The notes beneath the pieces were generated by a model. The model was not told the DNA's origin, did no database searches, and was given only the letters and a program-made list of their open reading frames with translations. The position numbers and the translations under genes are program-made. Shown piece after piece: positions 1 to 61,429 of a stretch of 64,000 bases of DNA (position 1 is its first letter; every line of letters begins with the position of its first letter). This stretch comes from Macrostomum lignano (Eukaryota): assembly GCA_002269645.1 (NCBI GenBank), contig NIVC01000892.1:186001-250000 (forward strand), read 5' to 3'.

Positions 1-797
1 GGCAACCAGAGACGAGACGATTGAGAGGCCGGCAACCAGAGACGAGACGATTGAGGCCGGCAACCAGAGACGAGACGATTGAGAGGCCGACAAGCAGAGA
101 CGAGATGATTGAGAGGCCGGCAACCAGAGACGAGACGATTGAGGCCGGCAACCAGAGACGAGACGATTGAGGCCGGCAACCAGAGACGAGACGATTGAGA
201 GGCCGACAAGCAGAGACGAGATGATTGAGAGGCCGGCAACCAGAGACGAGACGATTGAGGCCGGCAACCAGAGATGAGATGATTGAGAGGCCGGCAACCA
301 GAGAGGAGACGATTGAGAGGCCGGTAGACGAGACGATTGAGAAGCCGGCAAGCAGAGACGAGACGATTGAGGCCGGCAACCAGAGAGGAGACGATTGAGA
401 GGCCGGTAGACGAGACGATTGAGAAGCCGGCAAGCAGAGACGAGACGATTGAGGCCGGCAACCAGAGAGGAGACGATTGAGAGGCCGGTAGACGAGACGA
501 TTGAGAAGCCGGCAAGCAGAGACGAGACGATTGAGAGGCCGGCAACGAGACGATTGAGAGGCCGGTAGACGAGACGATTGAGAAGCCGGCAAGCAGAGAC
601 GAGACGATTGAGAGGCCGGCAACGAGACGATTGAGAAGCCGGCAAGCAGAGACGAGACGATTGAGAGGCCGGCAACGAGACGATTGAGAGGCCGGCAAGC
701 AGAGACGAGACGATTGAGAGGCCGGCAACGAGACGATTGAGAGGCCGGTAGACGAGACGATTGAGAAGCCGGCAAGCAGAGACGAGACGATTGAGAG
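1..797. repeat. Minisatellite, 28-31 bp variant units (GGCAACCAGAGACGAGACGATTGAGAGGCC)
   Basis: Direct tandem units with several length variants; runs off the left edge and abuts the BEL/Pao fragment at ~797. Confidence 0.95.
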
Positions 798-2897
798 CGC
801 TATGGGCTGCAGTGTCTCACTTGCATCAAAAGGTTAGAAGCTGCTCTTTCTCGTAATTTTAAATCTCAGGCGAGTTCGCCTCCCACTCAGTCGCAGCAAC
901 CTCAAGTCAAGCTCCCTAAGCTGCAGGTTCCCACGTTCGATGGGCAGGTTTCAACATGGCAATCATTTTGGGATCAATTCGATTCCTCGATCAATTCAAA
1001 CACCTCACTTTCTGAAATTGACAAGTTTAATTATCTCGTGGCCTCTCTATCTGAGGCGGCAAAGTCATGCATTAGAGGCCTGGCTATCACTGCTGACAAC
1101 TATTCCACTGCGGTGGATATTCTAAAAGAGCGCTTTGGCAAACCCGAGGTGGTTGTCAAGGAGTTAATGCATAAAATCTCGGAGCTCCGCCTGTCTGATG
1201 CATCCCTGCGCTCTCTGCAGCAATTTCACGATGACATTTCTGCTGCCATGCGTAGCCTGAACGCTCAGGGTGTCTCTGCCAATTCTTACGAGTCACTTTT
1301 GGTTCCATCGCTGATGAGCAAGTGCCCATCAGCCTTCCGGTTAGAGCTCCTGAGAGCCGCGCAAATGCAGGGATCGGACATTAATTCACTGGAGAGCCTC
1401 TTGCGATCGCTAAAGCAGGAAATTACGGTTCGCGAAAGTGCTGGGCAAGGGCAGTTCCTGAGTTCGAAAGAGTCGACGAAGTCCTCATCACCTGCTGGCT
1501 CTAGCAGTAGCAAAGCTTCTCCACGGCATTCGTCTGTCTCGACTCTGGTGACACTTCAGCCGAAGGCGTCCAAACAGGCCTCTTCGAAGATCTTCTGCAC
1601 CTACTGCAAAGGCTCACACTCGTCTGAGTCCTGTACCAACCTCGTTTCCGCTGATCAGAGACGGGCCTTTCTTGCGTCTGAGAAGCGCTGCTTTAGGTGC
1701 TTGCGCCTGGGACATTTGGCACCTCAATGCAAAGATCCGAGACCATGTCGGGGCTGCTCAGGTAGACACCATGTCAGCATCTGCATTAAAAATTCACAGG
1801 CAGGCAGGGAGTCAGATAAGCCATCCACGTCCGCCAAGAAACCAGCTTCGCCGCCGAATCAGTGCTTAGCATCTGTGACAGAGTCTTTTGCCTTCACAAT
1901 GTTCATTTCTGACAATCCGGCAGTGGCTCTGCCCGTTGCCAAAGCCATTTTGCTCAGCACAGATGGTCGCCGGGAAATGATGGTGCGTGTTCTGTTTGAC
2001 ACGGCCAGTAATCGCAGCTACATTCGTCAGGACATTTGTGACCTGCTGGGCATTCAGGCGAATTCACTGGAACGGCTTAACGTCTCGTCGTTTGCTGGAA
2101 ACAGCACGGCTCTGCAGTCTGGTAGTGCTAACATCGCATTACGCAAAATGGATTCTTTCGAAGTGATCCAGATTCGTACAAATATCGTCGAGACAATATG
2201 TCAACCACAACATTCAGTCAAAGTGACAGGGTTCGAACACCTGCACTCTCTAGATTTAGCGGATCCATACGATCCTCGGGATCAGCACACGCCTATATCT
2301 ATTCTAATAGGCTCAGACTTCTATTACCAAATCGTGGGTGACACGGTAGTGCGTGGAGACTCTGGCCCAGTGGCCATCTCATCAAAGCTGGGGTTTCTAT
2401 TATGCGGCCCCCTCGCTACTGGCATCAACAATACATGTAGTGCTAGTATAGGCAACTCGATCGAGTCTAGTGTTCCCAATGAGGACACCTGCGCTTTAGC
2501 TCTATGCTGCTCAGTTTGCGAGAATATCTCACTGGACGCTTCACACACACGAGACATTTCGACTCTCTGGAAATTAGAGTCTATTGGGGTCCTAGATGAT
2601 CCGGGCCCCAACTCGGAGTCCTCGTTTCATTGCAATCCTCAGCTTCGGGATGGACGCTATTCCGTCCAGCTACCATGGTCTCTGCCAAAAGAGTCCATTA
2701 TGCTCACTGACCACTTTGATTTGTCTTTTCGGCGACTGATATCGACCAGACGTCAACTGGAACGCGATCAGACTAAGCTGGCCCAGTGCGAAGCCATCAT
2801 CGCAGAGCAAGAGGCTCTTGGCATCATTGAGAGAGTCCCTGTTAGTAACTCTAGTAGTAGCCTGATTCACTATCTTCCTCACAGCTGTATCTCCTAG
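795..2897 (+). mobile_element. BEL/Pao LTR-retrotransposon gag-protease fragment, truncated just before the RT core
   Basis: Frame open from 795: VKLPKLQVPTFDG..W..FWDQF (DUF1759-type gag), Cys/His knuckles CTYCKGSHSSESC, CFRCLRLGHLAPQC and CRGCSGRHHVSIC, protease LFDTASNRSYI, LGFLLCGP, LWKLESIG, RYSVQLPW; ends at IHYLPH. Confidence 0.92.
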
Positions 2898-4213: not shown

Positions 4214-6292
4214 CTAGAGGCTAATCTGATAGTACAGCACCGGGTGGCCGTCTTGGCTGAGGATGGCCGATACTGCGGACTCGCTAGCATCTGTCGTCAG
4301 GGTGGTCAGCTTCCTAGGATCACCGGGTGCACTGCCAAGACTCGCTTGAGGTCTTCGAAAGCTTTTTGATGCTCCAGGCCCCATGCACACAAAGCTGGAC
4401 TTCTGACTCCGCAAAGCTGTCAAGGGCTCAATCCTCTCCGAATAGGCCTGGATGTAGCGCGCATAATAGTTGGTTAACCCGAGGAATGACTCCAGCTCCT
4501 TCCTCGGCGTAGGCGGCTTGATTTTCTGGATCTTCTCCACCAGCTTCTTGTCTGGCCGAACTCCATCCGCTGCGATGCGATATCCCAGGAAGCAGATCTC
4601 ATGAAGTGCTTCGAAAGACGCACTTTTCATGGTTGATTTCCATGCCGGCCTCTTTGAGGGTGCTGAGCAAATGCTTTACTTTGGCGTCCAGCTCACCTGT
4701 CTGAGCGCCCACGCAAACTTCCTCTTGATAGATCACCATGTTCGACACCGCGTCGCCAATGGTGGCCTTCATGGCTGCCTGAAGTTGGGCACTGGCTGTC
4801 TTGACACCGTAGGGGATTCTCGTCCAACGCAGCAGGCCGATCGGCGTATTGATTGTGAGCACTTCCCTTGCGTTCTCATCCAGCTCGATCTGGTTGTGGG
4901 AGTTTGTCAAGTCGACGGTGGCGAAGTGGTTCATCCCGGACTCAATATGTTGGGCAGCGGGAAGGAGTCAGCGCATATTTTGGGATTGACTCCCACCTTG
5001 TACTCCGAGCAGATTCGCTGATCATTGTTCGGTTTGCGCGCGACCACAATTGGTGAGGCCCACCGGCTGCCTCCGGGTGGTACAGGCTCCAGAATCCCCC
5101 TCTGCACCATCTTCCGCAGCTTCTCGATGACCAGCGGCTTCATGTGGATCGGTACCTGACGGGCCTCGAAATAGCTTGGCTGCGCATTCTCTTTCAAGAC
5201 TATCCGAGCCCTGAAGTCCCGCAGCTGATGGCAGGCTGATGGTTGGTGGCAACTCCGTCGAGCTTGAAGTCCAAATCATCGGTGCCCAGCAGTCCATGGT
5301 TCTTCTTGCATGCGGCCACAGTAACCTCGATGCAGGCAACTCTGTCGCTGAGCTCTACCACCGCCAAGAAGCAACCGAAGGTCTTGATGACAGACCCATC
5401 GAACTGGCGAAGCTGCCTGGGACACCGCTTGAGCCGAGGTTCACCCAAGGCTTTCCAAAAGTTCTTGGGGATGATGCTGGCGTCTGATCCGGAATCGAGC
5501 TGCATTGTCAGGAGCTTACCGTCCAGCTTCACATTCTTGATGCTGCTCGTCTTGATCTTATTCGTGCTGCTGACGGTGAAGACTGGGCTGCGAGCCAGGT
5601 TGCCTTCCGGTTCCTCAAGCCTGCCAACTTGTTCTGGGCGCTGCTTTTTCACACAGCTGCTGGGGCTTACTACTCAGTTGGGGTGCTGGAGCTGGTCGAT
5701 GACTGTTTGACCTGATCGGAGCTGCTGTACTGCTGGATGAGCTCCAGCTGTTGAACATATTCGACGCAGGTATCCAGCTTCACAGCTGTGGCAGCGCTCT
5801 GGATGAACTCGAGAAACTTGGCCCGATGCTTCACGTTGTGCAGTCCGCTGATCAGCATCGTCTGAATGAGCTCGTCCTCGGCAGTCTGATGGCAGCCCTC
5901 AGCGTTCAGTTTGCTGAATTCGCAGTACCTGGAGGCATCCGTGAGACGCTGCGCAAATTTCTGGCTCGATTCACCAGTCTCTTGCCGAAGTGCCATGAAT
6001 CTGGATCTCTCCACAGTGACCAGCCTTTTCTTGGGTGCCATCTTCTCCATGATCAGGTTGCGAATGTGCGAATGTCAGCGAAATCCATATTCTCCAGTTC
6101 CTTGGGCTGCACCATGACAGACACTCTGCGGACTGCCTCGACTCCCGCCTTGAACAGGAAGAGGTCAGTAATCTGGCGATCTTCATTGGAGTCCGTCAGC
6201 TTCTTGCTTCGACTGAGTGCGGCGAAACTCCTGAGCCATGCCTCAGTCATGGCTGGATCGTTTAGTGGCAGGTCACTTGCTTACGACGCCAT
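4214..6292 (-). mobile_element. Decayed Ty3/gypsy retrotransposon: gag, protease, RT and start of RNase H; no integrase
   Basis: Frameshifted pieces: gag (ERSRFMALRQETGES..FAQRL), protease LDSGSDASII, RT WASPIVVARK, PYGVKTA, YQEE (YxDD mutated), FLGY, LESFLGLTNYY, RNase H TTDASESAVSAILSQ. PBS-like TGGCGTCGTAAG at 6291. Confidence 0.92.
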
Positions 6293-7130: not shown

Positions 7131-7522
7131 GTCAGTCGGTAGTCAGTCGGTAGTCAGTCGGTAGTCAGTCGGTAGCCAGTCGGTAGTCAGTCGGTAGCCA
7201 GTCGGTAGCCAGTCGGTAGTCAGTCGGTAGTCAGTCGGTAGCCAGTCGGTAGCCAGTCGGTAGTCAGTCGGTAGTCAGTCGGTAGCCAGTCGGTAGCCAG
7301 TCGGTAGTCAGTCGGTAGCCAGTCGGTAGCCAGTCGGTAGCCAGTCGGTAGCCAGTCGGTAGCCAGTCGGTAGCCAGTCGGTAGCCAGTCGGTAGTCAGT
7401 CAGTAGTCAGTCGGTAGTCAGTCGGTAGTCAGTCGGTAGCCAGTCGGTAGTCAGTCGGTAGCCAGTCGGTAGTCAGTCGGTAGTCAGTCGGTAGCCAGTC
7501 GGTAGCCAGTCGGTAGCCAGTC
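7131..7522. repeat. 11-bp satellite (GGTAGTCAGTC/GGTAGCCAGTC) just 3' of the gene A stop codon
   Basis: About 35 direct units; same family as 20745-21338. Confidence 0.95.
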
Positions 7523-7527
7523 TCACA

Positions 7528-10500
7528 CTAGCTCTGAGGCACGGTGATTCCGGCTGAAGTCTGCATCGCAGTCTCCATATCGTCAACCTTGCTTGGGCCG
7601 TGTTTGATCAGCATGAAGATCTGGAATAATGTTAATCGTTGATTTCAACCGACAAAGTATATTTTCCAAGACATTCACAAGCATCACCGCAAGATCGGTC
7701 CTCGCACCTTGCTGCCAAACACCAGAATCAGGGTGGTACTTGAGCAGATTATGATGCAGCTGGCAATGAGCGACACTTTCAGATCCTGACTCGACGAGGG
7801 CAGAGCGAACAGAATGACCACACCGATGAGACCCATGACGGTGGTGTTGTACACGCACACTCCGATCTTCTTCGAGTCGTTGAGCGCTTCCACCTGCACC
7901 GTGCGAGTCTCCCAGGCAAAGAACAGCGCGAACAGCAGCAGAAAACCTTTGACTCCAAGTTCGGAGGCAATCCAAATTGTCATGTTGTTGCAGGTGCATA
8001 CATCGATTGTCGATCGAATGAGAGTTCCGTCTTCAGTTTCCTAGAATTTATTGTTTCAGGCATTGTTCGGAACGTTGGTTAATATGAAAATAAAATGGCT
8101 CTTCTGATACTTTTAATTCACTGCCATTGACACAATTTTTCAGCAAAAGTTTTGAATACTTTTTGAATACCGGATGCTGTGGCACAAAATCAAGCTGTCA
8201 AGACACCCGTAAGAGTCCACACCCATATGCCTTTACTCACAACGGAGGGCAGAGAGACACTCTCCACTGTCAGCGGATCGATGATTCCCCAAGCGATTAG
8301 CAGGACAATATCAGTGGCCAGGACTAGCAGGATAACTGCAAACAGATGCGAATCCTTGATGGCCTGGGGAAAGAGACGAAAATTCGAGCTAAGTTGTTTG
8401 CAAAAACGGCACAGGGGATTGATTCGTGCGATATTAACTGTTACCTTAATCAGCTTCTCGCGTACGTCTGTCTATAGAACTTCCCAATGTAAACCCTTTT
8501 TATTGCGATTTCTAAAACTGTTTCTCTATGATTACTAGATTTAGTGCCTATTTTATTATTGCATTAGTTGCCGATATGTATCGAAAGTAAACTTTTTCAG
8601 AGCAAATTTTGGATATATTTTTGTAACCATCCAAGGATCAAGATCATCGTAAATTTGGACGAGTTGAGAAGATGTCGATGTTCGTCTTTACAGGCTCTGA
8701 TTATACTCGTAAAAATGTAATGTTGTAAATAATTGTGGTCACATTTGGAGTCGAGCCCTGGACCTCCTGATTTCAACAACCACGCTTAATAGAGTAAATC
8801 GGGAACATAAAAAGCCCTACTAACAGACCGGCAGCTAAGCTCACCACCCTGCGCAGCTTCACGTTGGTGAAGATGCGGTGCACTCGCCACGTCTTGGCCA
8901 GCATGGCGCCGAACGCGGCCGAGTAGCCAATGGTGAGCAGAGCCGTTTGAGTCCAGCACAGACCGGTGCTCACTGCCCAGTGCGAGTTCACCGCCATCAC
9001 AATGCAGGACGCGTAGCACATCAGACAGCCAGCGCCGATCACGTTGTTCACGAGGGGACTGCTCATCTTGATGAGGCGAAGCTCTCTATAGTGGAAGTTC
9101 ACAGCCACTGTTGCTATGGAAACGGCGATGCCGATGGAGGAGGCTGAGGTGAGTGCGATAGTTCCGGCTTCGCTCAGCTGCAGCTGCCTAGTGAGCAGCT
9201 CGGGAGCGTCCACCGGAGGTGAGCCGCCTGAAATTTACACACACGGTTAATAACTGATCTCATGTTTTCCTGTTCTCTTGTTTGAGTCCATTGATTCTGA
9301 TAGATTCTACAACTTTTCTTCAATTTATTCAAGTTCTCGCATAGACTTAACCGATTCCTTACCTGCGAACCAAAATTTAGCGGTCCAGTTCAACACGTTT
9401 TCTATCGGGTCGTATGTGCCAACCAGGTGCCTGGATAGGTCTGCGGGAATATACAAGTTACAAGTGGAACTTCTGTGAGGTACGACAAGCCACTCCGTGC
9501 GCGATATGAGTTCATCGGTGCTGCGAAATTGAAATATTCATTCAACAGTGAAATGTGACATTCTAAATTTAAAACTCTTCCGCTTCAAAGAGCAATAGGA
9601 GTATGTTTTATGAATAAAAAGGGCTGAAAAAACGAACTCTGGCATGGTAACCCACAGCCAAGCTCACTTCTCAGCTGATAGATCATCACCACAGAGGTTC
9701 GGTCACCGTTGCTGTCAAACACGACTCGACCCTGCATTGAGAAGAGGCGGTTGAGCTGCCGTGAGCTCGCAGACTGACCGTCAAAGTAAAAAAACGCAGA
9801 TAAAAAAGCTAAACTAACAGAGAGACCAATAAAGTCCAGCTTCAAAATGTTCCTCATCAGCTCAGCTTTGAACGATGAGTTGCCCAGCTGCATCTCATCT
9901 GAGTAGTTCCACGACTGCAGCGTCTGATTCAGCGCGAGGGCCGCCGACATCACGGAGTCGAAGCGAAGGTCGAAACCGCTAATCGTTTTCATTCTGGCGT
10001 CCGCGAGTCTGGCGGGGTACTCGATGAGGAACTGGCGGTACAGCTCTGGGAGAGTCTGCGGACAGTTACGGGAAGGGAGTCGTCTGCAGGCCCCTACAGC
10101 TGTGGGAGAGTCCGCAGGACAAATGAATCAAGGATCAGCTCATACCTTTCCAGCAGGTCCAATCCTTGTCTCAATCAGCGCAGGGTCCATCACTGCCGTG
10201 TCCGTCTCGATGGAGCCCTCCATACTCTCTGCTCTGTCGGAGTCTGGGCAGGAGCCCTCGATTTGGGCGGTGGTGAATGGCAGACCCACTTGGATCCAAA
10301 AGTACTTCGGACCGTAGGCGCCCAGTTGTTTGAGCTGAAGATCGATTAGTGCAGGTTTGGAGGTCACGATTATATCACGAGAACTACAAGCTTGTAGCTA
10401 ATCGCCAAGAATTGATAGTATTATCCAAATGCTTGAAACTCATATGGAAAACCCTGTCTATCACAAACCTTTAAGTATAAGCCGTATATTTTTAAGGAAA

Positions 10501-13500
10501 CTTACAACGCATTCGAAGCGCTTGTCCGGATCTTCCGTGCCTCCAACGCGAACGATGATGAAAATTCTGATGTCGCTTTGCTTGAAAAGTTATTGCGGCG
10601 CAGGGAATACTTGGCATTTATTATATATAACTTTTTGCAGCCCATTTGGGCTTGCGCGCATTTAATTTAATCCAAGATATGTTTGTCAAAGTAATGGAGC
10701 TTTTGTCTATGGTAGCAAGGCTGGCACATCGGCATTTAATTTGGTCCAACAAGCATCGATTTGGTCCATTAGGTTCATTTGCAGCTCAGTCCCAGAATTG
10801 TGGACCATATGCTGGGCAGTTGAACGAATGCCATTGGCTTGTGATCGAAGCACTCGACAGAGGTGAACACCCAAAGGACATTGCAAGGTTGCTGAATGTA
10901 AAAGAAAAGGTGGTTTACAGCATCCATCAGGATGTTGAAACTCTTTCGCAGGCAATCTCTGCCGGCAATCGCCAAGGCAAGTTGCTCGAGAGCCTCAGGT
11001 CCAACTGCTACTCGATGCAGTTGAGACGAACCCTTTGTTGACGTTGCCGAAATGCAGCAGAAGTTAAAAGAACAGTTCCAGTTGGTTATCAGATTTCGAC
11101 TATCAGCAGAGCTCTGGAAAAGCGACTGAAAATTGTTGGTAGAGACGCTGACATTCCAGCGGTGCGCAACAACCTGCAGAGGGTTGTGAGAAGGCAAGAG
11201 TTTGTCCAATGGCTCACGAGTGCTTCGACCAAATGGATGCTTGTTGGGCCAAATTAAATGCCGATGTGCCAGCCTTGCTAACATAGACAAAAGCTCCGTT
11301 ACTTTGGCAAACGTATCTTGGATTAAATTAAATGCGCGTAAGCCCAAATGGGCTGCAAAATGCTATACTACAACATAGCAAATTAGTAAAATAAGCTATT
11401 GGCGTTGAATTCTTACCAATAGGTTTCTAATAGCATTAGTTGGATCGCTGCTGTAGATCATTTTCTGATACGAGGTCAGATTGTTAGCAATCAGAGCCGC
11501 CTCGAGTTTCAGAGCCACCTGATTTGTTTAAAAGAATTCTGTGAGAATTTTCATGACGGCTCTAATAACAATGATTCAAGGCATGCATGACCCTTCTCAA
11601 GTCAAAGTGGTTTAGCTGTCGATGAGAACTCAGAGCTCCTTTCGAACCGTGCCGCAATAGGACCTGGCCTGCGATTCCTGGACTCAAGTTTTTAATTCGT
11701 TAGAGTCAGGGGGCTGAGTGCACCCTGGCGCACTTAAAGCGACATTGTCCATCCAACCAGACTGCAATTTTGAAAACTAAAAGTAAAAAAACTTTTTTTT
11801 CGAAAACTTCTGTTTCATTAGGAGAAATTTTTGAGCATTGAGGAGCATTGTGCACAGTGCTATCGATCCAATGGCATATGCTATTCTGTTAACCAGCTGC
11901 ATGGGGTAAAATTTCTCACTGGGTAGGCCACCGCGAAGTCTGACGCAATGAAGCCGAACTTTTTCCAGCCAAATTTTTTGATAATTTTTACAGTCGGCTC
12001 AACAAACAGACTGCTGGCGATTGGCATTCGAACGTAGTAGGGGTAGAGGGACTTGTCACTCAGCAGTGGCGACGTGTTTGAGAAGCCGATCTGAAAATAG
12101 AAAGTTTATAAGGATGTTACAATTTGGTCAGAGGCTGTTTTCATGGTTGGTCAGATAAATTTACCAAGATTGGTCAAATAATGTCGTCAATATTGGTCAG
12201 ATAATGATTGGTCAGAGTGTGCCATCAATATTGATCAGAGAGTGCCATTAATATTGGTCAGAGATTTTCATCAATATTGGTCAGAGAAAATAATCAATAT
12301 TGGTCACAGATTTTCATCAGTATTAGTCAGAGAGTGCCATCAATATTGGTCAGAGAGTGCCATCAATATTGGTCAGAGAGTGCCATCAATATTAGTCAGA
12401 GAGTGCCATCAATATTGGTCAGAGAGTGCCATCAATATTAGTCAGAGAGTACCATCAATATTGGTCAGAGAGTGCCATCAGTATTGGTCAGAGATTTTCA
12501 TCAATATTGGTCAGAGAGTGCCATCAATATTGGTCAGAGAGTGCCATCAATATTGGTCAGAGAGTGCCATCAATATTGGTCAGAGAGTGCCATCAATATT
12601 GGTCAGAGAGTGCCATCAATATTGGTCAGAGAGTGCCATCAATATTGGTCAGAGAGTGCCATCAATATTGGTCAGAGAGTGCCATCAGTATTGGTCAGAG
12701 ATTTTCATCAATATTGGTCAGAGAGTGCCATCAGTATTGGTCAGAGAGTGCCATCAATATTGGTCAGAGAGTGCCATCAATATTAGTCAGAGAGTGCCAT
12801 CAGTATTGGTCAGAGAGTGCCATCAATATTGGTCAGAGAGTGCCATCAATATTGGTCAGAGAGTGCCATCAGTATTGGTCAGAGATTTTCATCAATATTG
12901 GTCAGAGAGTGCCATCAATATTAGTCAGAGAGTGCCATCAATATTGGTCAGAGAGTGCCATCAATATTAGTCAGAGAGTGCCATCAATATTGGTCAGAGA
13001 GTGCCATCAATATTGGTCAGAGAATGTCATCAATATTGGTCAGAGAGTGCCATCAGTATAGGTCAGAGATTTTCATCAATATTGGTCAGAGAGTGCCATC
13101 AATATTGGTCAGAGAGTGCCATCAGTATTGGTCAGAGATTTTCATCAATATTGGTCAGAGAGTGCCATCAGTATTGGTCAGAGAGTGCCATCAATATTGG
13201 TCAGAGAGTGCCATCAATATTGGTCAGAGAGTGCCATCAATATTGGTCAGAGAGTGCCATCAATATTAGTCAGAGAGTGCCATCAATATTGGTCAGAGAG
13301 TGCCATCAATATTGGTCAGAGAATGTCATCAATATTGGTCAGAGAGTGCCATCAGTATAGGTCAGAGATTTTCATCAATATTGGTCAGAGAGTGCCATCA
13401 ATATTGGTCAGAGAGTGCCATCAATATTGGTCAGAGAGTGCCATCAATATTGGTCAGAGAGTGCCATCAATATTGGTCAGAGAGTGCCATCAATATTGGT

Positions 13501-14076
13501 CAGAGAGTGCCATCAATATTGGTCAGAGAGTGCCATCAATATTGGCCAGAGAGTGCCATCAGTATTGGTCAGATAACAACAGCACTACTCACCTGAGGCA
13601 GGTAGTAGTATTGCAGAATATCCGCCACAATTTGAGATTGGTGCGAGAACGAGGCGCCCAGCAGCAGAGCTTTGTTGGGAGGCTGCAGGTAGCCGTCAAT
13701 CAGTGCTTTGGCGGCGCTGCCAGTTTTGTCCTGAAATTTCGGGATTACAATTTGAAATCGAATTTCCTCGAAAAAGACCAGTTGGTTGGGGTACTGAGCG
13801 GGACTGAAGGAGGAGACACACTGAGAAGAAACAGACGAGGAGCTTAAAAAACGGACTACTCACTTCCTCAGCAATCTCCAGAGTGTAGATCATCTCGAAG
13901 GCCGGGAACAGGTGGCTGATATTGTTGGTGATGTACCTGAAGCTGAAATTCAAATAATCCGGGTCGGTGACGAAGCCGGTGGCGCTGGAACTGATGCAAA
14001 GCACGTTCACCACTTGGCGTCCAGCAGCTGCCCCGAATGAGGCTAGCAGGAGCAGAATGAGCATTCGATTCGACAT
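7528..14076 (-). CDS. GABA-B receptor-like class C GPCR, paralog A (~732 aa, 13 exons)
   Basis: Exons 14076-13864, 13730-13593, 12090-11920, 11518-11417, 10580-10506, 10334-10146, 10055-9819, 9731-9668, 9440-9363, 9227-8845, 8363-8241, 8040-7708, 7620-7528; all GT-AG, phases consistent, no internal stop. Signal peptide, Venus-flytrap domain, GGSPPVD linker without Cys-rich domain, GABA-B-type 7TM ([24 protein letters not shown]...ALNDSK.IG..VYN). Confidence 0.9.
8570..8790. repeat. Intron-10 unit shared by both paralogs: one copy in A, two in B (~22470-22710, ~22765-22995)
   Basis: Shared GATATGTATCGAAAGTAAA ... GGACCTCCTGATTTCAA; the minus strand carries a B-box-like GGTTCGAGCCC/GGTTCGAATGC in B, possibly a tRNA-derived relic. 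Confidence 0.5.
10628..11365 (+). mobile_element. Non-autonomous Tc1/IS630-type DNA transposon, ~135-bp TIRs, in intron 4 of gene A
   Basis: 10630-10765 is an imperfect inverted copy of 11228-11363; TA-containing flanks; internal frameshifted HTH pieces VIEALDRGEHPKDIARLLNVKEKVVYSI and LLDAVETNPLLT..ISTISRAL; no DDE domain. Confidence 0.75.
12130..13572. repeat. 23-bp minisatellite (ATTGGTCAGAGAGTGCCATCAAT) filling intron 2 of gene A
   Basis: About 60 units, degenerate at the left edge; source of the spurious ECHQYWSES ORFs. Confidence 0.97.
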
Positions 14077-14204
14077 TTTTGATAAGCTCCCCTCGGGAAA
14101 GATGCCACCCTCGGAACCGGCCCGCTCCGTCAGTTCCTTTTGTAGTTTATGCACACACCTGCCTTGCTTCCTTCAGCCAATGGCCTTGTCCGCTCGTCCC
14201 ATGC

Positions 14205-19020
<4,816 letters not shown>

Positions 19021-19524
19021 AATGTGTTTGTTTGTTCCGAGTTCCCGTTAGACAATCAGCCAGCGAGTTTTCATTTGAAGAATTCCGCAACCGGCGTTAT
19101 TTCTGGGATAATAAGGGATAAAAGAAAATTAGACCTGACTGATTTCGTCCAGATCTGACACAAATCGAGAAAGTAATCATAAAGGCAGCCAGATCGAGTC
19201 AGGTGGTGAAGCAGCTCCTGCCAAATTAATAGACTGAATCTGAATGGACAAGAAGTCATAAAACTTCTAATTTCAGGTGACCAACAACACCTGCTCAAAT
19301 CATGCTGCAAATTGTGTCGCGATTAAAAGGTGAAAATAATGAAAATATACGACCAAGAAATAGAAAATGACAGGAAGATGAAGAGTAGCTCAGCTGAAAT
19401 CCGGGCCTGAGCTGAAAGATGGAGAAGCCTCTAATTTTCTTGCATGGATCTCCGCTTCGCTCTCATTCTCTGGGAATTGAAGATTCGATGCAATAACAGG
19501 TATCGGAAAACTTCAGCTAAAGAG

Positions 19525-20357
19525 ATTGCTAATCTAGCTAACCTCATAGATAAATAATAGAATGTATTGCTAATCTATAGCCAACATCACAGATGAAGGA
19601 ATAGAATGGATTGCTAATCTATAGCCAACATCACAGATGAAGGAATAGAATGGATTGCTAATCTAGCCAACCTCATAGATAAATAATAGAATGTATTGCT
19701 AATCTATAGCCAACATCACAGATGAAGGAATAGAATGGATTGCTATATAGCCAACCTCATAGATAAATAATAGAATGTATTGCTAATCTAGCCAACATCA
19801 CGGATGACGGAATAGAATGGATTGCTAATCTATAGCCAACATCACGGATGAAGGAATAGAATGGATTGCTAATCTAGCCAACATCACGGATGAAGGAATA
19901 GAGTGGATTGCTAATCTAGCCAACATCACGGATGAAGGAATAGAATGGATTGCTAATCTAGCCAACATCACCAATGAAAGAATAGAATGGATTGCTAATC
20001 TAGCCAACATCATGGAATAATGGAATAGAATGGATTGCTAATCTAGCCAACATCACGGATGAAGGAATAGAATGGATTGCTAATCTAGCCAACATCACGG
20101 ATGAAGGAATAGAACGGATTGCTAATCTAGCCAACATCACGGATGAAGGAATAGAATGGATTGCTAATCTAGCCAACATCACGGATGAAGGAATAGAATG
20201 GATTGCTAATCTAGCCAACATCACGGATGAAGGAAGAGAATGGATTGCTAATCTAGCCAACATCACGGATGAAGGAATACAATGGATTGCTAATCTAGCC
20301 AACATCACGGATGAAGGAATACAATGGATTGCTAATCTAGCCAACATCACGGATGAA
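19525..20357. repeat. 42-bp minisatellite (GCTAATCTAGCCAACATCACGGATGAAGGAATAGAATGGATT)
   Basis: About 19 units; same family at 29942-30519 and inverted at 43405-43600. Confidence 0.95.
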
Positions 20358-20744
20358 GGATAATATGATTTTTCTGGATAGATTTCTGCGAGTAAGTCAG
20401 TCCGGTAGTTTCGTACGCAGACGCACTGGCACCCGTAAAAAAGAAAGGAATCACACCATTCTCGCTACAAGCCTAGCATGCTTTGCTTGCAGATCAGATA
20501 AATAAATACTCGTTCGAGGGTGGAGGATTAGAGCGGCATGAAGAACACTCTATTTTTTCTGAAAAAAACTTCTTTGTTAAATGGACGTGTTTGACAACAC
20601 TGCGCTAAACTAAAGACTGGAAGCTTTAACTCAACGATTCATTGGATCATTCATCCCGTGGCTGATTTTTGCAAATATAAAGCTAGAAAATGTTGTGTTT
20701 CCTGTACTGTTGCGAGGTTATTGTGAGCTGTTTATTCGGTAGGT

Positions 20745-21338
20745 AGACAGTCAGTAGACAGTCGGAAGCCAGCCGGTAGCCAGCCGGTAGTCAGTCGGTA
20801 GTCAGTCGGTAGTCAGTCGGTAGTCAGTCGGTAGCCAGCCGGTAGTCAGTCGGTAGTCAGTCGGTAGCCAGCCCGTAGTCAGTCGGTAGTCAGTCGGTAG
20901 TCAGTCGGTAGTCAGTCGGTAGTCAGTCGGTAGTCAGTCGGTAGTCAGTCGGTAGCCAGCCGGTAGTCAGTCGGTAGTCAGTCGGTAGCCAGCCCGTAGT
21001 CAGTCGGTAGTCAGTCGGTAGCCAGCCCGTAGTCAGTCGGTTGTCAGTCGGTAGTCAGTCGGTAGTCAGTCGGTAGTCAGTCGGTAGTCAGTCGGTAGCC
21101 AGCCGGTAGTCAGTCGGTAGTCAGTCGGTAGCCAGCCCGTAGTCAGTCGGTTGTCAGTCGGTAGTCAGTCGGTAGTCAGTCGGTAGTCAGTCGGTAGTCA
21201 GTCGGTAGTCAGTCGGTAGTCAGTTGGCAGTCAGTCGGTAGTCAGTCGGTTGTCAGTCGGTAGTCAGTCGGTAGTCAGTCGGTAGCCAGCCGGTAGTCAG
21301 TCGGTAGACAGTCGGTAGACAGTCAGTAGTCAGTCGGC
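20745..21338. repeat. 11-bp satellite in the presumed 3' UTR of gene B
   Basis: About 54 units of GGTAGTCAGTC between the stop (21349) and AATAAA (minus, 20736-20731). Confidence 0.95.
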
Positions 21339-21348
21339 AAGCTGCATT

Positions 21349-24300
21349 CTAGCTCAGGGGCACCACAATGCCACCAGGGTTACGCATTGCACTTTCATTA
21401 TCTCCAACCCTGGCTGGCCCGCGCTTAATTAGCATGAAGATCTGGAATTGTATTAATAAGTAGTTTGTGAGTTGATAAAAGACATCTTCAAATGTGTGAC
21501 TCATGATTGATATACACGCGGTTACCACACCTTGCTGCCAAACACCAGAATCAGGGTGGTACTTGAGCAGATTATGATGCAGCTGGCAATGAGCGACACT
21601 TTCAGATCCTGACTCGACGAGGGCAGAGCGAACAGAATGACCACACCGATGAGACCCATGACGGTGGTGTTGTACACGCACACTCCGATCTTCTTCGAGT
21701 CGTTGAGCGCTTCCACCTGCACCGTGCGAGTCTCCCAGGCAAAGAACAGCGCGAACAGCAGTAGAAGTCCTGAAGTTTTGAGCAAAAATCACTCTTTAAA
21801 ACTGCTCAAAGTTTTTAACCAATAATTTCGATTGCAAACCTTTGATTCCGAGTTCAACACCAATCCAAATTGTCATGTTGTTGCAGCTGCATTCGTCAAT
21901 TACGGTCTTCAGTAGAGTTCCGGCTTCTGTTTCCTGGAAAGTGTTTAATATTCTTGTTTTAATTTTTTAAACGATTTTTTGACTTAATGATTACTAACAG
22001 TAGGCAATGTCGCTATATGAAAATCGACAGCCTAAATAAACTGACCACGGCTGGTAGAAAGAATCGTTGAAATGTCATCGGATCGAAGATGGCCCAGGTG
22101 ACCAGCAGAGCGACATCGGTGGCCAGGACTAGCAGGATTACGGCGAACAGGTGTGAATCCTTGATGGTCTGCGAATGTAAAATAATCAAGTTGAGTTAAA
22201 TTAATGGGTTTCCCACCGAGATTCTCCCAACAAGATTCTCTCTTTGAGCTTATTTGAGCTTATGCTCACTCATTTAACTGATGATTATGATTACAAATTC
22301 ATAAACCCTGGTGGCAGCAATCTAGCAATTGCATTAGGGATTAGTAAATGTGTTCTGAGTGAAGTAATAATCATAAGCTACCAATCGACAGACTCTAGCA
22401 CCCTGCCGTTATACACAATCCTTAGCAGCAATTATTTCTAGCTAATAAGTTAGTGGCTCATTATAAATACCGTATCACTTGCCGATATGTATCGAAAATA
22501 AACTTTATAATGTGTAGTATTAGTTGAATTTTATCTGGTAATCCAATAAATCTTTGGGCATCGCCTTTTGAAACATTGTCGAAGAATTTAACTGAAATCT
22601 TGGTCTTTTGGGCTTTAATTCTATAATTGTTTGCTGCAAATTATTGTAGTCGCTGTGGGGCTCGAACCTCGGACCTCCTGATTTCAAGAACCACGTGATT
22701 CCTTTCTGCTACGATGGCCCTCTTGAAACGGAGTGAACTTTTACTATGACTTTGTATCACTTGCAGATATGTATCGAAAGTAAAGTGTTGCTAGGTAAGT
22801 TATCAGTTGAATTTAATCAGGGAATTTTATGTATCATTGCGCTAGGCCTATCGGCACATTGTTGATGACTTTTTAGTTTGCCATTGTTTGCACTTTTCAA
22901 CATAAAAACATTGGCATTCTGGGCTGTAAACAATTGTGACCGCATTCGCATTCGAACCCTGGACCTCCTGATTTCAAGAATCACGTGATTCCTCTGCGCC
23001 ACAACGGCCGTTTCGCGACGGAGTGACTCTGGAACATAAAAGCCCTACTAACAGACCGGCAGCTAAGCTCACCACCCTGCGCAGCTTCACGTTGGTGAAG
23101 ATGCGGTGCACTCGCCACGTCTTGGCCAGCATGGCGCCGAACGCGGCCGAGTAGCCAATGGTGAGCAGAGCCGTTTGAGTCCAGCACAGACCGGTGCTCA
23201 CTGCCCAGTGCGAGTTCACCGCCATCACAATGCAGGACGCGTAGCACATCAGACAGCCAGCGCCGATCACGTTGTTCACGAGGGGACTGCTCATCTTGAT
23301 GAGGCGAAGCTCTCTATAGTGGAAGTTCACAGCCACTGTCGCTATGGAAACGGCGATGCCAATGGAGGAGGCTGAGGTGATGGCAATTGCTCCGGATCTG
23401 CTCAGCTGCAGCTGCCTAGTGAGCAGCTCGGGAGCGTCCACCGGAGGTGAGCCGCCTGCAGTTAGCCATCCGGTATGGACTGTTGGATTTCGAGCTGTTT
23501 TAATGCTAACAAGACAAATCAATCTCACTTGCGAACCAGAGATTGGCATGAGTCCAGTTTGCCGCATTAGCAATGGGGTCGTACAGTCCGACCAGGTGCC
23601 GCGTCAGATCTAATGAGGTACATAAAGATTGAGCTGATATTCAACCATACGCATGTACTCAGCAACATTGAAAAGTCGCCACTCTATGCGCCAGTGAGCA
23701 ATTTCTCTTGGACTGTTCTGAATTTGATTTTGTAATTGATTTTTCAAGCTTATTGAGGTAAAGTTTTTTTGGATTTTTCTACTAACACTGTCGACAATCG
23801 AGAAGATTAACGGGAAGGTTAATAGTTGAGCAGCCACCACGTATAATGATACGTATCCATGCAGACATGCCCAGACACACAGTCGCGCAGGTATGCATAA
23901 AGTCACACGAAAGCTCGAAGCTGATTTCGAGTAGCTCGAAATCAAACCGTTGCTACACCAAGATATGGATTCTCTTCTGAGCTTCCCCAAATGTCAACAC
24001 GTGTAAGAGAAAGGTAACAAATAATTCTATGTTGTTTAGTGTAAGCTGTTGTACTTCTCAGCTGGTAGATCATCACCACAGAGGTTCGGTCACCGTTGCT
24101 GTCAAACACGACTCGACCCTGCATTGAGAAGAGGCGGTTGAGCTGCCGTGAGCTCACAGACTGACCGTCAAGGTAAAAAAACGCAGAAGAAAAAGCAAAA
24201 CTAACAGAGAGACCGATAAAGTCCAGCTTCAAAATGTTCCTCATCAGCTCAGCTTTGAACGATGAGTTGCCCAGCTGCATCTCATCTGAGTAGTTCCACG

Positions 24301-27300
24301 ACTGCAGCGTCTGATTCAGCGCGAGGGCCGCCGACATCACGGAGTCGAAGCGAAGGTCGAAACCGCGAATCGTCTTCATCACAGCGTTCGCGCTTCTGCC
24401 GGGGTACTCGATGAGGAATTGGCGGTACAGCTCTGGGAGAGTCTGCGGACAGTTGCGGGAAGGGAGTCGTCTGCAAGTCTCTGATGTTGCACTGCACGGC
24501 CCTACAGCTCTGGGAGTCTGCAGGACAAAAATCAAGGATCAGCTCATACCTTTCCAGCTGGTCCAATCCTTGTCTCAACCAGCGCAGGGTCCATCACCGC
24601 CGTGTCCATCTCGATGGAGCCCTCCAGACTCTCTGCTCTGTCGGAATCTGGGCATGAGCCCTCAACAATGTTTTGGGTATCTGTCAGGCCCACTTGAATC
24701 CAAAAGTATTTTGAGCCATAAGCTCTCAGGCGCTTCAGCTGCGGGTCGACGATGCCGTGACACTTATTGAAAGCAAATATAACGTTCTGTCATTATAAAG
24801 TTCGAGGGGAAGTATGGATAGTATAGAAACTAAACGAGGAAGGTAATCGATTGAAAATTAGGAAATGTGTTTCATTTCTATTTTATGACTATTTGGTGCC
24901 TCTAAGCGACGGCAGTGGAGTAGGGTTGCTCGTGCCAGTCTATACTTGCTTTTACATCGCTCGTGCCACTAGCGAGGCCAGAGGAGTGGGGTGGGTGCAT
25001 AATTGGTTTGACTATACTATGTCACGTGCCTCTCGCGAGGGCAGAGGAGTGGGGTGGGTGCATAATTGGTTCGACTATACTATGTCACGTGCCTCTCGCG
25101 AGGGCAGAGGAGTGGGGTAGGTGCATAATTGCTTTGACTAGACTATGTCGCGTGCCTATCGCGAGGGTAGAAGAGTGGGGTGGGCGCATAATTGCTTTGA
25201 CTAGACCATGTCGCGTGCCTATCGCGAGGGTAGAAGAGTGGGGTGGGTTCATCAGCCAGCCTACACTGTACGAGTATATTTGGTTTGGCTAGACTATATC
25301 GCGTGCCTCTCGCGAGGGCAGAGGAATGGGGTGGGTGCATCAGCCAGCCTGGTTTAGCTGTGGAGTGCTGTGTGAGTTGAAAACTTTTTGATAAGTTTCT
25401 TTTTCAATCTCACAGTCACAGCTATAGAACTTCTACTTACAACGCAATCAAACCGCTTGCCCGGTTCCTCCAGAATGGCCACACGTACGATAATAAAAAT
25501 CCGGATATCATTTTCCTGTAAAATATGAATTTTTTCTTTACTTGAAGCTCCAATTTACTGTTTTTTTCTAATCGAAACAGTCTTAATTCCTTACCAACAG
25601 GTTGGTTATAGCATTGGTTGCGTCGCCGCTATAGATCATTTTCTGATACGAGGTCAGGTTATTTGCCTTCAATTCCGCTTCCAATTGTAGGGTGACCTCA
25701 AAAATAATTTAGTATATGAATTTCACATATGAACTCATACTGATGTTAAAAAAATTGCATTGAATTCTATTTTTCAAATTAACCCTTACCGGATAGACCA
25801 CTTCAAAGGAGGAGGTGACTAAGCCGAACTTTTTCCAGCCGAATTTCTTTATAATGTTTACCACCGGCTTGACAAAAATACTGTTAGCAATGGGCAGTCT
25901 AACATAGTAGGGGTACAGTGACTTGTCACTTAACAGTGGAGACGTGTTTGAGTAGCCAATCTGCAAATGTTCAATGAGTCGTACGCTGTTTGTAAGACAA
26001 TTTAAGACAAACCGTTTTACCGCTCTACTCACTTCAGGTAGGTAGTAGTACTGTCCAATGTCGGCCAAGATTTGCGATTGATGAGAGAATGAGGCACCCA
26101 GCAGCAAAGCTTTGTTGGGAGGCTGCAGGTAGCCATCGATCAGGGCTTTGGCGGCGCTGCCAGTTTTGCCCTGGTATTGGGCGATTGAATTAAATCTTAG
26201 TTCTAAATTAAATCTAAATCTAAGAAGCTGCTTTCACACAAAAACTGCTTTTATTCGACCTTTGTCGTGTCTTCCAAAAGAGGAGAATAAATTAGAGAAG
26301 AAGAGAAAAAGGATAGGAGAGGAGAGGAGAGGAGATGAGATGAGAGGAGAGAAGAGGAGAGGAGAGGAGAGGAGAGGAGAGGAGAGGAGAGGAGAGGAGA
26401 GGAGAGGAGAGGAGAGGAGAGGAGAGGAGAGAAGTGGAGAGGAGAGGAGAAAAGAAGAGAGTAGAGGAGAGGAGAGGATAGAAGAGAGGAGGGCAGGAGA
26501 GGAGAGGAGAGGAGAGGAGAGGAGAGGAGAGAAGAGGAAAGGAGGGGAGAGGAGAGGAGAGTAGAGGAGAGGAGAGGAGAGAAGTGGAGAGGAGAGGAGA
26601 AAAGAAGAGAGTAGAGGAGAGGAGAGTAGAGGAGAGGAGAGGAGAGAAGTGGAGAGGAGAGGAGAAAAGAAGAGAGTAGAGGAGAGGAGAGTAGAGGAGA
26701 GGAGAGGAGAGAAGTGGAGAGGAGAGGAGAAAAGAAGAGAGTAGAGGAGAGGAGAGGATAGAAGAGAGGAGGGCAGGAGAGGAGAGGAGAGGAGAGGAGA
26801 GGAGAGGAGAGAAGAGGAGAGGAGGGGAGAGGAGAGGAGAGGAGAGGAGAGGATAGAAGAGAGGAGGGCAGGAGAGAAGTGGAGAGGAGAGGAGAGGAGA
26901 GTAGAGGAGAGGAGAGGAGAGTAGAGGAGAGGAGAGGAGAGGAGAAAAGAAGAGAGTAGAGGAGAGGAGAGGAGAGGAGAGGATAGAAGAGAGGAGGGCA
27001 GGAGAGGAGAGGAGAGAAGAGGAGAGGAGGGGAGAGGAGAGGAGAGGAGAGGAGAGGATAGAAGAAAGGAGGGGAGAGGAGAGGAGAGGAGAGGATAGAA
27101 GAGAGGAGGGCAGGAGAGGAGAGGAGAGGAGAGGAGAGGAGAGGAGAGGAGAGGAGAGGAGAGGAGAGGAGAGGAGAGGAGAGGAGAGGAGAGGAGAGGA
27201 GAGGAGAGGAGAGGAGAGGAGAGGAGAGGAGAGGAGAGGAGAGGAGAGGAGATGAGAGGAGAGGAGAGGAGAGGAGAGGATAGAAGAGAGGAGGGCAGGA

Positions 27301-27791
27301 GAGGAGAGGAGAGCAGAGGATATAAAAGAGCAGAGGAGAGGAGAGGAGAGGAGAGGAGGGGAGAGGAGAGGAGAGGAGAGGAAAGGAGAGGAGAGGAGAG
27401 GAGATGAGAGCAGAGGATATAAACGAGAAGAGGTGAAGATAGAAGAGAGGAGAGGAGAGGAGATGAGAGCAGAGGATATAAACGAGAAGAGGTGAAGATA
27501 GAAGAGAGGAGAGCATAGGAGAGGTGACACCAAACGAAAGCTCCAAAGCCAGTCACTTACTCCATCAACCATCTGCATTGTGTAGCTGAGCTGAAACTTG
27601 GGAAACAGGTCACTTATATTATTATTGACGTATTGAAAGCTGTACTTCAAGATGTCTTGGTCCACTTCGAATACAGGCGAATTCGAGTTGATGCAGAGGA
27701 TATGGATTGTCTGCCGGCCCGCTGCCTCAGCCGCGGGGCAAAGAAGCAGAGCAAGAAGCAACAGCTGTAGGCAAAGGATTAGCCTGACCAT
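21349..27791 (-). CDS. GABA-B receptor-like class C GPCR, paralog B (~739 aa, 14 exons)
   Basis: Exons 27791-27561, 26170-26033, 25960-25790, 25696-25595, 25515-25441, 24738-24550, 24442-24206, 24118-24055, 23609-23529, 23455-23073, 22168-22046, 21933-21840, 21769-21531, 21441-21349; GT-AG, collinear with paralog A, open throughout. TATA-like TTATAAAA ~60 nt upstream of the ATG. Confidence 0.9.
24955..25350. repeat. 63-bp minisatellite in intron 5 of gene B
   Basis: GCGAGG anchor recurs at 24972, 25035, 25098, 25161 and 25224 (63-bp spacing), then 25312. Confidence 0.9.
26316..27515. repeat. (GAGGA)n polypurine microsatellite in intron 1 of gene B
   Basis: Direct inspection; source of the spurious LLSSP/RRGEE ORFs. 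Confidence 0.97.
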
Positions 27792-28107
27792 TTTCCGTTG
27801 TTTCAGAATAATTCCGAAATGATGCGGGGATTTGAGCACCTGCAGCATGTTTTATAAGCTGCCTGCCGGCCAGTGGGGAGCAGGTGGTCTCATTGCAGCG
27901 ATTTTCTCTGGCTGCTTTTCTGCTTGCTTTAATTTTCTTTAATTTCAGTTTTCTCTTTGCCGCAGCCACCCTCTTCTCTCTATTTTTTAATTGTTGCCTC
28001 AGTCACCGTTCCTCCATCTCTACTTCCGCTTCACCTTATGCCTTGACTTCCACTGCACCTGTCACCTCGCCTTCTCCCTCGAAATGCCACCTGCCTTCAT
28101 GTTATGG

Positions 28108-28740
28108 ACTAAAGTCTAGCTGGCGTAGACTAAACTCCAGCTGGCATGGACTAAACTCCAGGGCATAGACTGAACTCCAGCTGGCATAGACTAAAACTCC
28201 AGCTGGCATAGACTGAACTCCAGCTGGCATAGACTAAACTCCAGCTGGCATAGACAAACTCCAGCTGGCATAGACTAAACTCCAGCTGGCATAGACTAAA
28301 CTCCAGCTGGCATAGACTGAACTCCAGCTGGCATAGACTAAACTCCAGCTGGCATAGACGAACTCCAGCTGGCATAGACTAAACTCCAGCTGGCATAGAC
28401 TAAAACTCCAGCTGGCATAGACTAAACTCCAGCTGGCATAGACTAAACTCCAGCTGGCATAGACTAAACTCCAGCTGGCATAGACTAAACTCCAGCTGGC
28501 ATAGACTAAACTCCAGCTGGCATGGACTAAACTCCAGGGCATAGACTGAACTCCAGCTGGCATAGACTAAAACTCCAGCTGGCATAGACTAAACTCCAGC
28601 TGGCATAGACTAAACTCCAGCTGGCATAGACTAAACTCCAGCTGGCATAGACTGAACTCCAGCTGACATGGACTAAACTCCAGCTGGCATAGACTAAACT
28701 CCAGCTGGCAAAGACTAAACTCTAGCTGGCATAGACTAAA
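28108..28740. repeat. 21-bp minisatellite (CCAGCTGGCATAGACTAAACT) upstream of gene B
   Basis: About 30 units, most containing CAGCTG. Confidence 0.95.
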
Positions 28741-55054: not shown

Positions 55055-55224
55055 CTTTAGAGTATTTTCTACTGTTTTTAGCTGTTTTTACTGTCTATAT
55101 CAGTTTTAGAGCAACTACCCTATTATTACTACTTCTAGGGAAGAGTTTGAAAATTTTATGTCGGCTTGATGCTTCGTAATGTTTAGTTTTTTAGTCTCAT
55201 CTATCGGTAATTCGAAAAATAGTT

Positions 55225-61207: not shown

Positions 61208-61429
61208 CACATGCGATATTCAATTAGCAGATTCATACATTTCATACAGTTCATACATTTTCCCCTGCTTTTTTAAAGCTAGTGGTAAATTGCTCACCAA
61301 AATTTCTGCTAGCCAATCAGAAGCCTCACGCTGAACATATGAGCTACTCCGTTATTGAGCAGCTATAGTTTTAGATAAGCAACCTGCATCAGAAGCCTTT
61401 ATGCCTGCGCTTTAAACCGTTCTCTCCTA

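Follow-up and report, generated by a model that had tools for sequence, protein, structure and literature searches.

The question raised by this locus is what two neighbouring receptor genes of the flatworm Macrostomum lignano represent: the flatworm form of the receptor for gamma-aminobutyric acid (GABA), amino-acid sensors with a pocket of the metabotropic glutamate receptor (mGluR) type, or a separate kind of G-protein-coupled receptor (GPCR) within class C. The genes, referred to as copies A and B, are located in a window of 64,000 nucleotides (nt), namely positions 186,001 to 250,000 of contig NIVC01000892.1 (assembly GCA_002269645.1), and all coordinates below are counted from the first base of that window. 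The answer considered probable here is that A and B are tandem paralogues of an orphan GABA-B-type class C subfamily expanded in Macrostomum, that both are apparently functional, and that they bear a ligand clamp and would act as self-contained dimers.

In silico analysis of the window revealed A and B as head-to-tail copies of one multi-exon gene, both complete and both on the minus strand. Copy A (7528..14076) was modelled manually with 13 exons encoding 732 amino acids (aa); from high to low coordinates, these are 14076-13864, 13730-13593, 12090-11920, 11518-11417, 10580-10506, 10334-10146, 10055-9819, 9731-9668, 9440-9363, 9227-8845, 8363-8241, 8040-7708 and 7620-7528, the last including the stop codon TAG. 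Copy B (21349..27791) consists of 14 exons encoding 739 aa: 27791-27561, 26170-26033, 25960-25790, 25696-25595, 25515-25441, 24738-24550, 24442-24206, 24118-24055, 23609-23529, 23455-23073, 22168-22046, 21933-21840, 21769-21531 and 21441-21349, again with a TAG stop codon in the last. Exon ends were anchored on conserved peptides and the flanking splice signals were then read; all introns of both copies are of the GT..AG type, and neither open reading frame (ORF) contains a stop or a frameshift. The first-pass annotation of this DNA, which had placed two intact paralogs between 7528 and 27791, is borne out by full-length ORFs across 13-14 exons, and its bounds are exact, 7528 being the final base of the copy A stop codon and 27791 the ATG of copy B (MVRLIL...). 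A second in-frame ATG of copy B is located 57 nt upstream, at 27848. A third copy was looked for within the window and none was found.

In each protein, a signal peptide is followed by a Venus flytrap that passes directly into a seven-transmembrane (7TM) domain, and a short tail closes the chain. Pfam analysis identified ANF_receptor (residues 51-395, 8e-35) and 7tm_3 (438-702, 2e-49) in copy A, and the same two domains (53-401, 1e-33; 446-709, 3e-49) in copy B; NCD3G, Sushi and GBR2_CC had no match in either protein even at E<=1. The linker between flytrap and 7TM domain is about 35 aa long and holds no nine-Cys domain, as expected of a GABA-B-type architecture, and the earlier description of that architecture as lacking a Cys-rich domain, sushi repeats and a coiled coil agrees with the two domains found. 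Among all PDB chains, the best matches of copy A are to the GABA-B subunits GB2 (7e-87) and GB1 (4e-75), over residues ~72-723, the top full-length solved match being human GABBR2 (e.g. PDB 7C7Q chain B), in which a flytrap is likewise fused to the 7TM domain without a Cys-rich domain. The mGluR chains align with full-length copy A in the 7TM domain only (~1e-27). When the copy A flytrap is compared alone, GB1 (3e-29) is ahead of GB2 (2e-23), and mGluR flytraps resemble it only along some 100 lobe-I residues (E ~1e-9).

The closest proteins, BOX15_Mlig033412g1 (P0001) and BOX15_Mlig020444g1 (P0002), are hypothetical proteins of Macrostomum lignano. When P0001, a deposited partial ORF, served as the query of an exhaustive HMMER scan covering 1.84 billion cluster representatives, the only proteins above 45% identity were from M. 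lignano (P0028, P0029, P0037, P0159 and P0091); P0022 is a further relative, so that at least six additional paralogues exist in the species. The next matches, at 38% identity or less, are proteins named "GABA-B subunit 1/2-like" of amphioxus, hemichordates, annelids, echinoderms, molluscs and corals. These orphan receptors of invertebrate deuterostomes, lophotrochozoans and cnidarians are the nearest relatives outside Macrostomum (~30-38% identity), and those of Ptychodera (XP_070537750), Branchiostoma (XP_019615198) and Pocillopora (P0008) show the same architecture in 750-800 aa. Many of them keep the lobe-I Ser/Ser/Thr triad described below and several have no heptad tail; unlike A and B, they carry tails of 50-120 aa and a conserved TM7 (seventh transmembrane helix) proline, and their relationship to the pair is weakly supported. 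In the databases searched, the subfamily is expanded only in Macrostomum lignano, in agreement with its proposed lineage-specific character. A link to Venus kinase receptors, prompted by the name of P0022 ('protein kinase domain-containing'), was considered and set aside, as by eye P0022 looks like a garbled fused gene model.

In a neighbour-joining (NJ) tree (119 sequences, 608 columns, Kimura distances, 200 bootstraps, NCD3G-bearing outgroup) A and B pair at 100% bootstrap. The pair falls outside the GB2 clade (94%), which by name look-up includes vertebrate, insect, nematode, nematomorph, rotifer, brachiopod, mollusc, hemichordate and echinoderm sequences, and is thus pan-bilaterian. It also falls outside the vertebrate GB1 clade (100%) and the GB3 clade (100%; millipede P0142 'subtype 3A' and urchin P0136). 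Trees of the separate domains, which had been proposed as a check, give the same answer: the sister of A+B consists of orphans only in 93/100 bootstraps for the flytrap and 82/100 for the 7TM domain, and the pair is never nested in a canonical clade. The claim that the two are not orthologues of GABBR1 or GABBR2 is therefore upheld, though by NJ trees only and on a long flatworm branch. The mean distance of the copy A flytrap is 1.62 to GB1 and 2.07 to GB2, while that of its 7TM domain is 1.20 to GB2 and 1.62 to GB1; A and B are GB1-like outside the membrane and GB2-like inside, as are their orphan relatives. Like A and B, GPR156 and arthropod GABA-B-R3 belong to the GABA-B family without being GB1 or GB2. 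Signalling by GPR156 takes place in a homodimer, and a GB-type 7TM domain can therefore work without a GB1 partner. The structures of GPR156 match copy A over the 7TM domain only, and the GB3 clade differs from the pair in tails of 325-449 aa with heptad stretches.

The same comparisons bear on the possibility that A and B are the canonical GABA-B receptor of the flatworm, one acting as GB1 and the other as GB2, fast-evolving and with the coiled coil lost. Its appeal lies in the top solved-structure matches, which are GB2 and GB1, and in a flytrap nearest to GB1 joined to a 7TM domain nearest to GB2; long-branch artefacts are also possible, and GPCR surveys of Fasciola, Schistosoma and Schmidtea, which recorded no bona fide GABA-B GPCR, could have missed a divergent one (PMC6114109, PMC3261222). 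However, the closest relative of each copy is the other (81% identical in protein), and the two have the same triad and near-identical 7TM domains, so that no asymmetry of the GB1/GB2 kind exists between them. Moreover, of the six GABA contacts that vertebrate GB1 representatives conserve, four have been lost, neither copy ever groups within the GB1 or GB2 clades, and the species holds the further paralogues listed above. On balance, a canonical receptor is highly improbable.

Exons 10-12 of copy A (7708..9227, minus strand), which code for the 7TM domain, encode a basic, GB2-like second intracellular loop (ICL2) with VKLRRVAIKD, the motif FAWETR in the sixth transmembrane helix (TM6) and a TM7 end reading VFGSK. 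Together with ALNDSK in the third extracellular loop, the ICL2 and TM6 motifs follow the GB2/orphan pattern and not that of GB1 (KIWW, LEPWKL, FLAYETK and KINDHR); in human GABBR2 the corresponding motifs (KMSSP, AKTWRVH.IF.NVK...IKD, FLAWETR and ALNDSK) are very similar. The GB2-type ICL2 and TM6 motifs, present in both A and B, are linked in the literature to G-protein coupling. The PK motif of TM7 (FxPKxY-type) is absent, A, B and P0028 having VFGSK where all other aligned relatives have VF[V/I]PK, so that the PK of GABBR2 stands against SK here. The Ser codon replacing the near-universal class C proline is located at 7711-7713 in copy A and 21534-21536 in copy B (both on the minus strand).

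The ligand pocket was mapped by HMMER alignment to the GB1b flytrap 4mqe_A (chain index + 47 = GB1b numbering) and in a MAFFT L-INS-i alignment including 4mqe, GB2 7c7q_B and rat mGluR1 1ewk, the mGluR1 sequence being 100% identical to the PDB chain. The top flytrap-only match is the human GABBR1b flytrap (PDB 4MQE/4MS3 series), whose S130 is kept in A and B and whose S153 is replaced by threonine. A Ser/Ser/Thr triad of lobe I is kept in A, B and the paralogue P0029: (i) serine at the GB1b S130 / mGluR1 S165 site (S100 in A, S106 in B); (ii) serine at the mGluR1 S186 site (S121 and S127); (iii) threonine at the GB1b S153 / mGluR1 T188 site (T123 and T129). The copy A codons S121-N122-T123 (12073..12081, minus strand) align with mGluR1 S186/A187/T188 and GB1b G151/S152/S153, their partner S100 being encoded at 13644-13646; the same lobe-I motif of copy B, S127-N128-T129, is located at 25943..25951 on the minus strand, with S106 at 26084-26086. 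The rat mGluR1 flytrap (PDB 1EWK) contains this lobe-I motif as PQI.(Y/F)S.TS..LSDK, with the S165, S186 and T188 equivalents, and the coral motif IGFSNSSPLLSSK is almost identical to that of the flatworm. The lobe-I peptide quoted by the first-pass annotation derives from exons 2-3 of copy A (its copy B counterpart contains GQYYYLPE), and the Ser/Thr pair that it pointed out is indeed kept in both copies. Human GABBR2, in contrast, has Pro at the S130 site and no ligand site.

The remaining contacts are changed. The GABA-contact set of GB1b, which we take to be S130, S153, H170, Y250, W278 and E349 in the numbering of Geng et al. 2013, reads S, T, P, T/L, L and G in the pair, whereas vertebrate GB1 representatives keep five or six of the six. 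Thus H170 is replaced by P, W278 by L and E349 (the mGluR1 K409 site) by G in both copies, and Y250 by T in copy A and L in copy B. From the alpha-amino-acid signature of mGluR1 (S165, T188, D208, Y236, D318) only the Ser and the Thr are kept; D208 corresponds to S in copy A and N in copy B, Y236 to V and D318 to T in both. The D208 site had been read as IAS/IAN, and it lies in PIASS of copy A and PIANS of copy B. Residues P140-I-A-S143 of copy A are encoded at 12013..12024 (minus strand), P at the GB1b H170 site and S143 at the mGluR1 D208 site, and P146..N149 of copy B at 25883-25894; the two closest Ptychodera/Saccoglossus sequences and P0032 differ from the pair in having Asp there. The phrase "mGluR-like amino-acid pocket" was accordingly an overstatement, since D208, Y236, D318 and K409 are all changed and the Ser/Thr pair is shared with GB1. 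The mGluRs also carry a Cys-rich domain between flytrap and 7TM domain, and a linking domain of this kind is general in amino-acid-sensing class C receptors (mGluR, CaSR, T1R, V2R and GPRC6A type) and absent from A and B.

The retained Ser/Thr is the generic carboxylate clamp of class C receptors and periplasmic binding proteins, common to GB1 too. As it is present in both copies, there is no division into a binding and a non-binding subunit of the GB1/GB2 style. A triad kept while all remaining contacts for GABA or an alpha-amino acid are changed points to a small carboxylate-bearing molecule as the probable ligand, and GABA bound as in GB1 or an L-amino acid bound as in mGluRs seems unlikely.

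Comparison of A with B revealed a mosaic along the length of the genes. Exons 7, 8, 10 and most of 12, together with intron 7, show 93-98% nt identity, whereas exons 1-6, 9, 11 and 13 show 56-85%. By the Nei-Gojobori method, the synonymous divergence (dS) of exons 7, 8 and 10 is 0.07; for exons 1-6, 9, 11 and 13, dS is ~1.25, the nonsynonymous divergence (dN) 0.19 and dN/dS 0.15. These values indicate an old duplication, both copies of which have been under purifying selection, with recent gene conversion on top. The conversion tract (A 8845..10055; B 23073-24442, minus strand) comprises exons 7, 8 and 10 (95-98% nt) and intron 7 (94%), and is patchy, exon 9 being divergent inside it. Intron 7 was the only intron used, being of equal length in the two copies, as global alignment inflates the identities of intron pairs of very unequal length. 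The sister-locus protein P0002 has the A-type ARLADARM and LSEAGTIALT, while copy B of the window has GRSANAVM at the first of these sites and differing letters at the second. The conversion boundaries thus differ between the window and the sister locus, and conversion between A and B appears to be still ongoing.

The pocket and the mosaic together bear on the possibility that A and B are chemosensory L-amino-acid receptors with an mGluR-like pocket, heterodimerising as neighbours without a coiled coil. The S165, S186 and T188 equivalents in A, B and P0029 would suit such receptors, lineage-specific expansion in a tandem layout is frequent in chemoreceptor families, and the pocket sites differ slightly between A and B (S/N at the D208 site, T/L at the Y250 site). 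Yet the residues that hold the alpha-amino and distal groups in mGluR1 (D208, Y236, D318, K409) have become S/N, V, T and G, and the Ser/Thr clamp occurs equally in GB1. Diversifying selection, which is typical of chemoreceptors, is not indicated by the dN/dS of 0.15, a whole-exon average, and homogenising gene conversion argues against specialised partner roles. Such receptors are therefore unlikely; a chemosensory function and an obligatory A/B pairing, taken for themselves, are possible but unsupported, and the tandem position, being expected in a locally expanding family, does not show that A and B pair.

Beyond the TM7 motif VFGSK, both copies have a tail of exactly 30 aa, as the first-pass annotation had estimated (~30 aa), and this is the shortest in the compared set. 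In copy A it is encoded by the last exon (7528..7620, minus strand), which reads IFMLIKHGPSKVDDMETAMQTSAGITVPQS followed by the stop codon; the copy B equivalent is located at 21349-21441. Human GABBR2 carries a tail of ~200 aa with a coiled coil, and GABBR1 a coiled coil plus an RxR retention signal; no heptad stretch was detected in the tails of A and B by our own crude, merely indicative heuristic, and no RxR motif by eye. The Pfam model GBR2_CC, run on 21 family members, had 0 matches, even among relatives with obvious heptads, and is uninformative for this family. The crude heptad score finds a coiled-coil-like stretch in canonical GB2, in GB3 and in about half of the orphans, the heptad-free ones with tails of 50-63 aa including those of coral (P0008), Solemya (P0013), Glandiceps (P0015), Lytechinus (P0021) and Lamellibrachia (P0033). 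The lack of a coiled coil is thus real in A and B, as had been claimed, but is not special to them, since about half of the orphans checked are heptad-free as well.

A coiled-coil exon hidden 3' of the genes was also considered and rejected: a tblastn search of 19 homologue tails against the window matched only the TM7 exon, and a blastn comparison of the 3' flanks of A and B detected nothing beyond a shared satellite. This satellite, with an 11-bp period, occupies 7133..7522, beginning 6 nt past the copy A stop, and recurs at 20742-21337 just past the copy B stop; the same stop-then-satellite layout in both copies suggests that the gene end predates the duplication.

Transcript support is available from a sister locus. 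P0001 and P0002 are encoded, also in tandem, on the Mlig_3_7 contig NIVC01001840.1, to which the window is ~96% nt identical. The Mlig_3_7 assembly contains ~180 Mb of blocks that are >=95% identical, and the gene models deposited for it in GenBank are ORFs called by TransDecoder on StringTie/TACO transcripts guided by RNA-seq (PMC5730564). Copy A and P0001 are 98.9% identical without gaps over residues 271-732, and copy B and P0002 97.0% identical without gaps over residues 277-739; the deposited ORFs share with the models the junctions of exons 6-13 and the stop codons (..VPQS*, ..VPLS*). Collinear transcript-derived ORFs of the sister locus indicate, indirectly, that the genes are expressed and that a longer last exon does not exist; the absence of a longer coiled-coil exon, on which the earlier proposal depended, is in this way supported by ORFs ending at the same codon. 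Both genes are already deposited as hypothetical proteins, and a literature search for Mlig033412, Mlig020444 and Macrostomum class C or GABA-B receptors found no paper describing this family.

The extra intron of copy B deserves separate treatment. It is a 70-nt segment (21770..21839, minus strand; GTTTGC...CTTCAG) inside the TM6 exon, between GIKG and LLLLF, and its retention shifts the frame, while the corresponding exon of copy A is continuous. The intron begins with GTTTGC where copy A (7950-7960) has the coding sequence GGTTTTCTG; an intron was thus gained or lost between the tandem paralogues. The junction is read through by P0002, and the intron segment is 98.5% identical in the Mlig_3_7 locus L001.

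A loss of function or ongoing decay of one duplicate or of both, in a genome rich in repeats and recently duplicated, might be argued from this dependence of copy B on the 70-nt intron and from a weak donor, GTACAA, as well as from the TM7 Pro to Ser change in both copies, the introns swollen by satellites and by a 141-nt inverted-repeat element, and the 5' truncation of the deposited ORFs. Decay is nevertheless very unlikely, because the ORFs run full-length through 13-14 exons without a stop or frameshift, the unconverted exons combine a saturated dS with a dN/dS of 0.15, the sister-locus ORFs share junctions and stop, and the Pro to Ser change, being common to P0028 (LVFGSK), is an old family trait and not recent decay.

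Several observations weigh against the preferred reading of A and B as functional members of an orphan subfamily. The intactness of copy B requires splicing of the 70-nt intron, and the donor of its intron 8 is the weak GTACAA just mentioned. The change of Pro to Ser in TM7 could impair or alter activation. The transcripts come from the sister locus, ~96% identical in nucleotides, and not from the window locus. The position of A+B among the orphan lineages has a bootstrap of 17-38% on a long branch, which formally leaves room for A/B as a highly derived co-orthologue of GB2 or GB1. Lastly, the equivalences of the lobe-II sites are taken from sequence alignment alone.

According to the orphan-subfamily reading, each subunit would join a potentially ligand-competent flytrap to a 7TM domain of the GB2 type, able to couple to G proteins, unlike the division of labour between GB1 and GB2. 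The receptor would most likely be a class C dimer, either a homodimer or a mixture of A and B, held by flytrap and transmembrane interfaces, and the checkpoint of canonical GABA-B receptors, based on the coiled coil and retention in the endoplasmic reticulum (ER), would not be used. The lobe-I triad would clamp the carboxylate of a small ligand that is probably neither GABA bound as in GB1 nor an L-amino acid bound as in mGluRs.

GABA-B-type class C receptors are thus present in an early-branching free-living flatworm, where they form an orphan subfamily of its own that has expanded, and their GB1-like flytrap with a GB2-like 7TM domain and no trafficking tail offers a natural test of the origin of the GB1/GB2 division of labour and of the dispensability of the coiled coil. 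M. lignano is amenable to transgenesis and RNA interference, so that these questions can be answered by experiment. A bolder and rather doubtful extension is that a basal flatworm lineage turned the GABA-B scaffold into expanded, self-sufficient receptors, with binding and coupling in each subunit, no coiled-coil/ER checkpoint and an altered TM7 switch, sensing environmental or metabolic carboxylates other than GABA. If true, an invertebrate would have derived from GABA-B receptors its own equivalent of the V2R/T1R chemosensory class C receptors of vertebrates, and the family would serve as a living model of the ancestral undivided GABA-B receptor. Apart from these points, A and B add a further lineage-specific pair of orphan receptors, of modest interest.

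The locus is rich in repeats. The two genes are separated by a (TCTA)n microsatellite of ~4.8 kb (14206..19021) with repeated higher-order blocks, and simple-repeat arrays are also located at 12207-13573, 26310-27476, 19524-20360 and 28107-28600. A 23-bp minisatellite fills copy A intron 2, an (AGGAG)n array of ~1.2 kb fills copy B intron 1, and 42-bp and 21-bp minisatellites are among the large arrays of the window. Intron 4 is only 79 nt long in copy B; in copy A it holds an insertion of ~740 bp (10626-11367). The terminal inverted repeats of this insertion, 141 nt long and 94% complementary, lie 460 nt from each other, and it carries mirrored ORFs starting MGLRAFNLIQD..., which have no Pfam match. 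This insertion looks like a foldback element or one of the miniature inverted-repeat transposable element type.

Other coding sequences were identified in the window. Retrotransposon remains are represented by a 700-aa gag-like ORF (795-2894, plus strand) with DUF1759, as in BEL/Pao elements, and by broken pol pieces (4217-6074, minus strand), namely aspartyl protease, reverse transcriptase and RNase H. The minus strand further contains an M14 zinc carboxypeptidase gene (~41016-43368), whose last open frame enters a (CTT/CCT)-type repeat, an ORF with a Core-2/I-branching glycosyltransferase domain (54271-55056), and a single-exon ORF of 364 aa for a rhodopsin-family (7tm_1) GPCR (60128-61219), situated ~32 kb upstream of copy B and unrelated to the class C pair.

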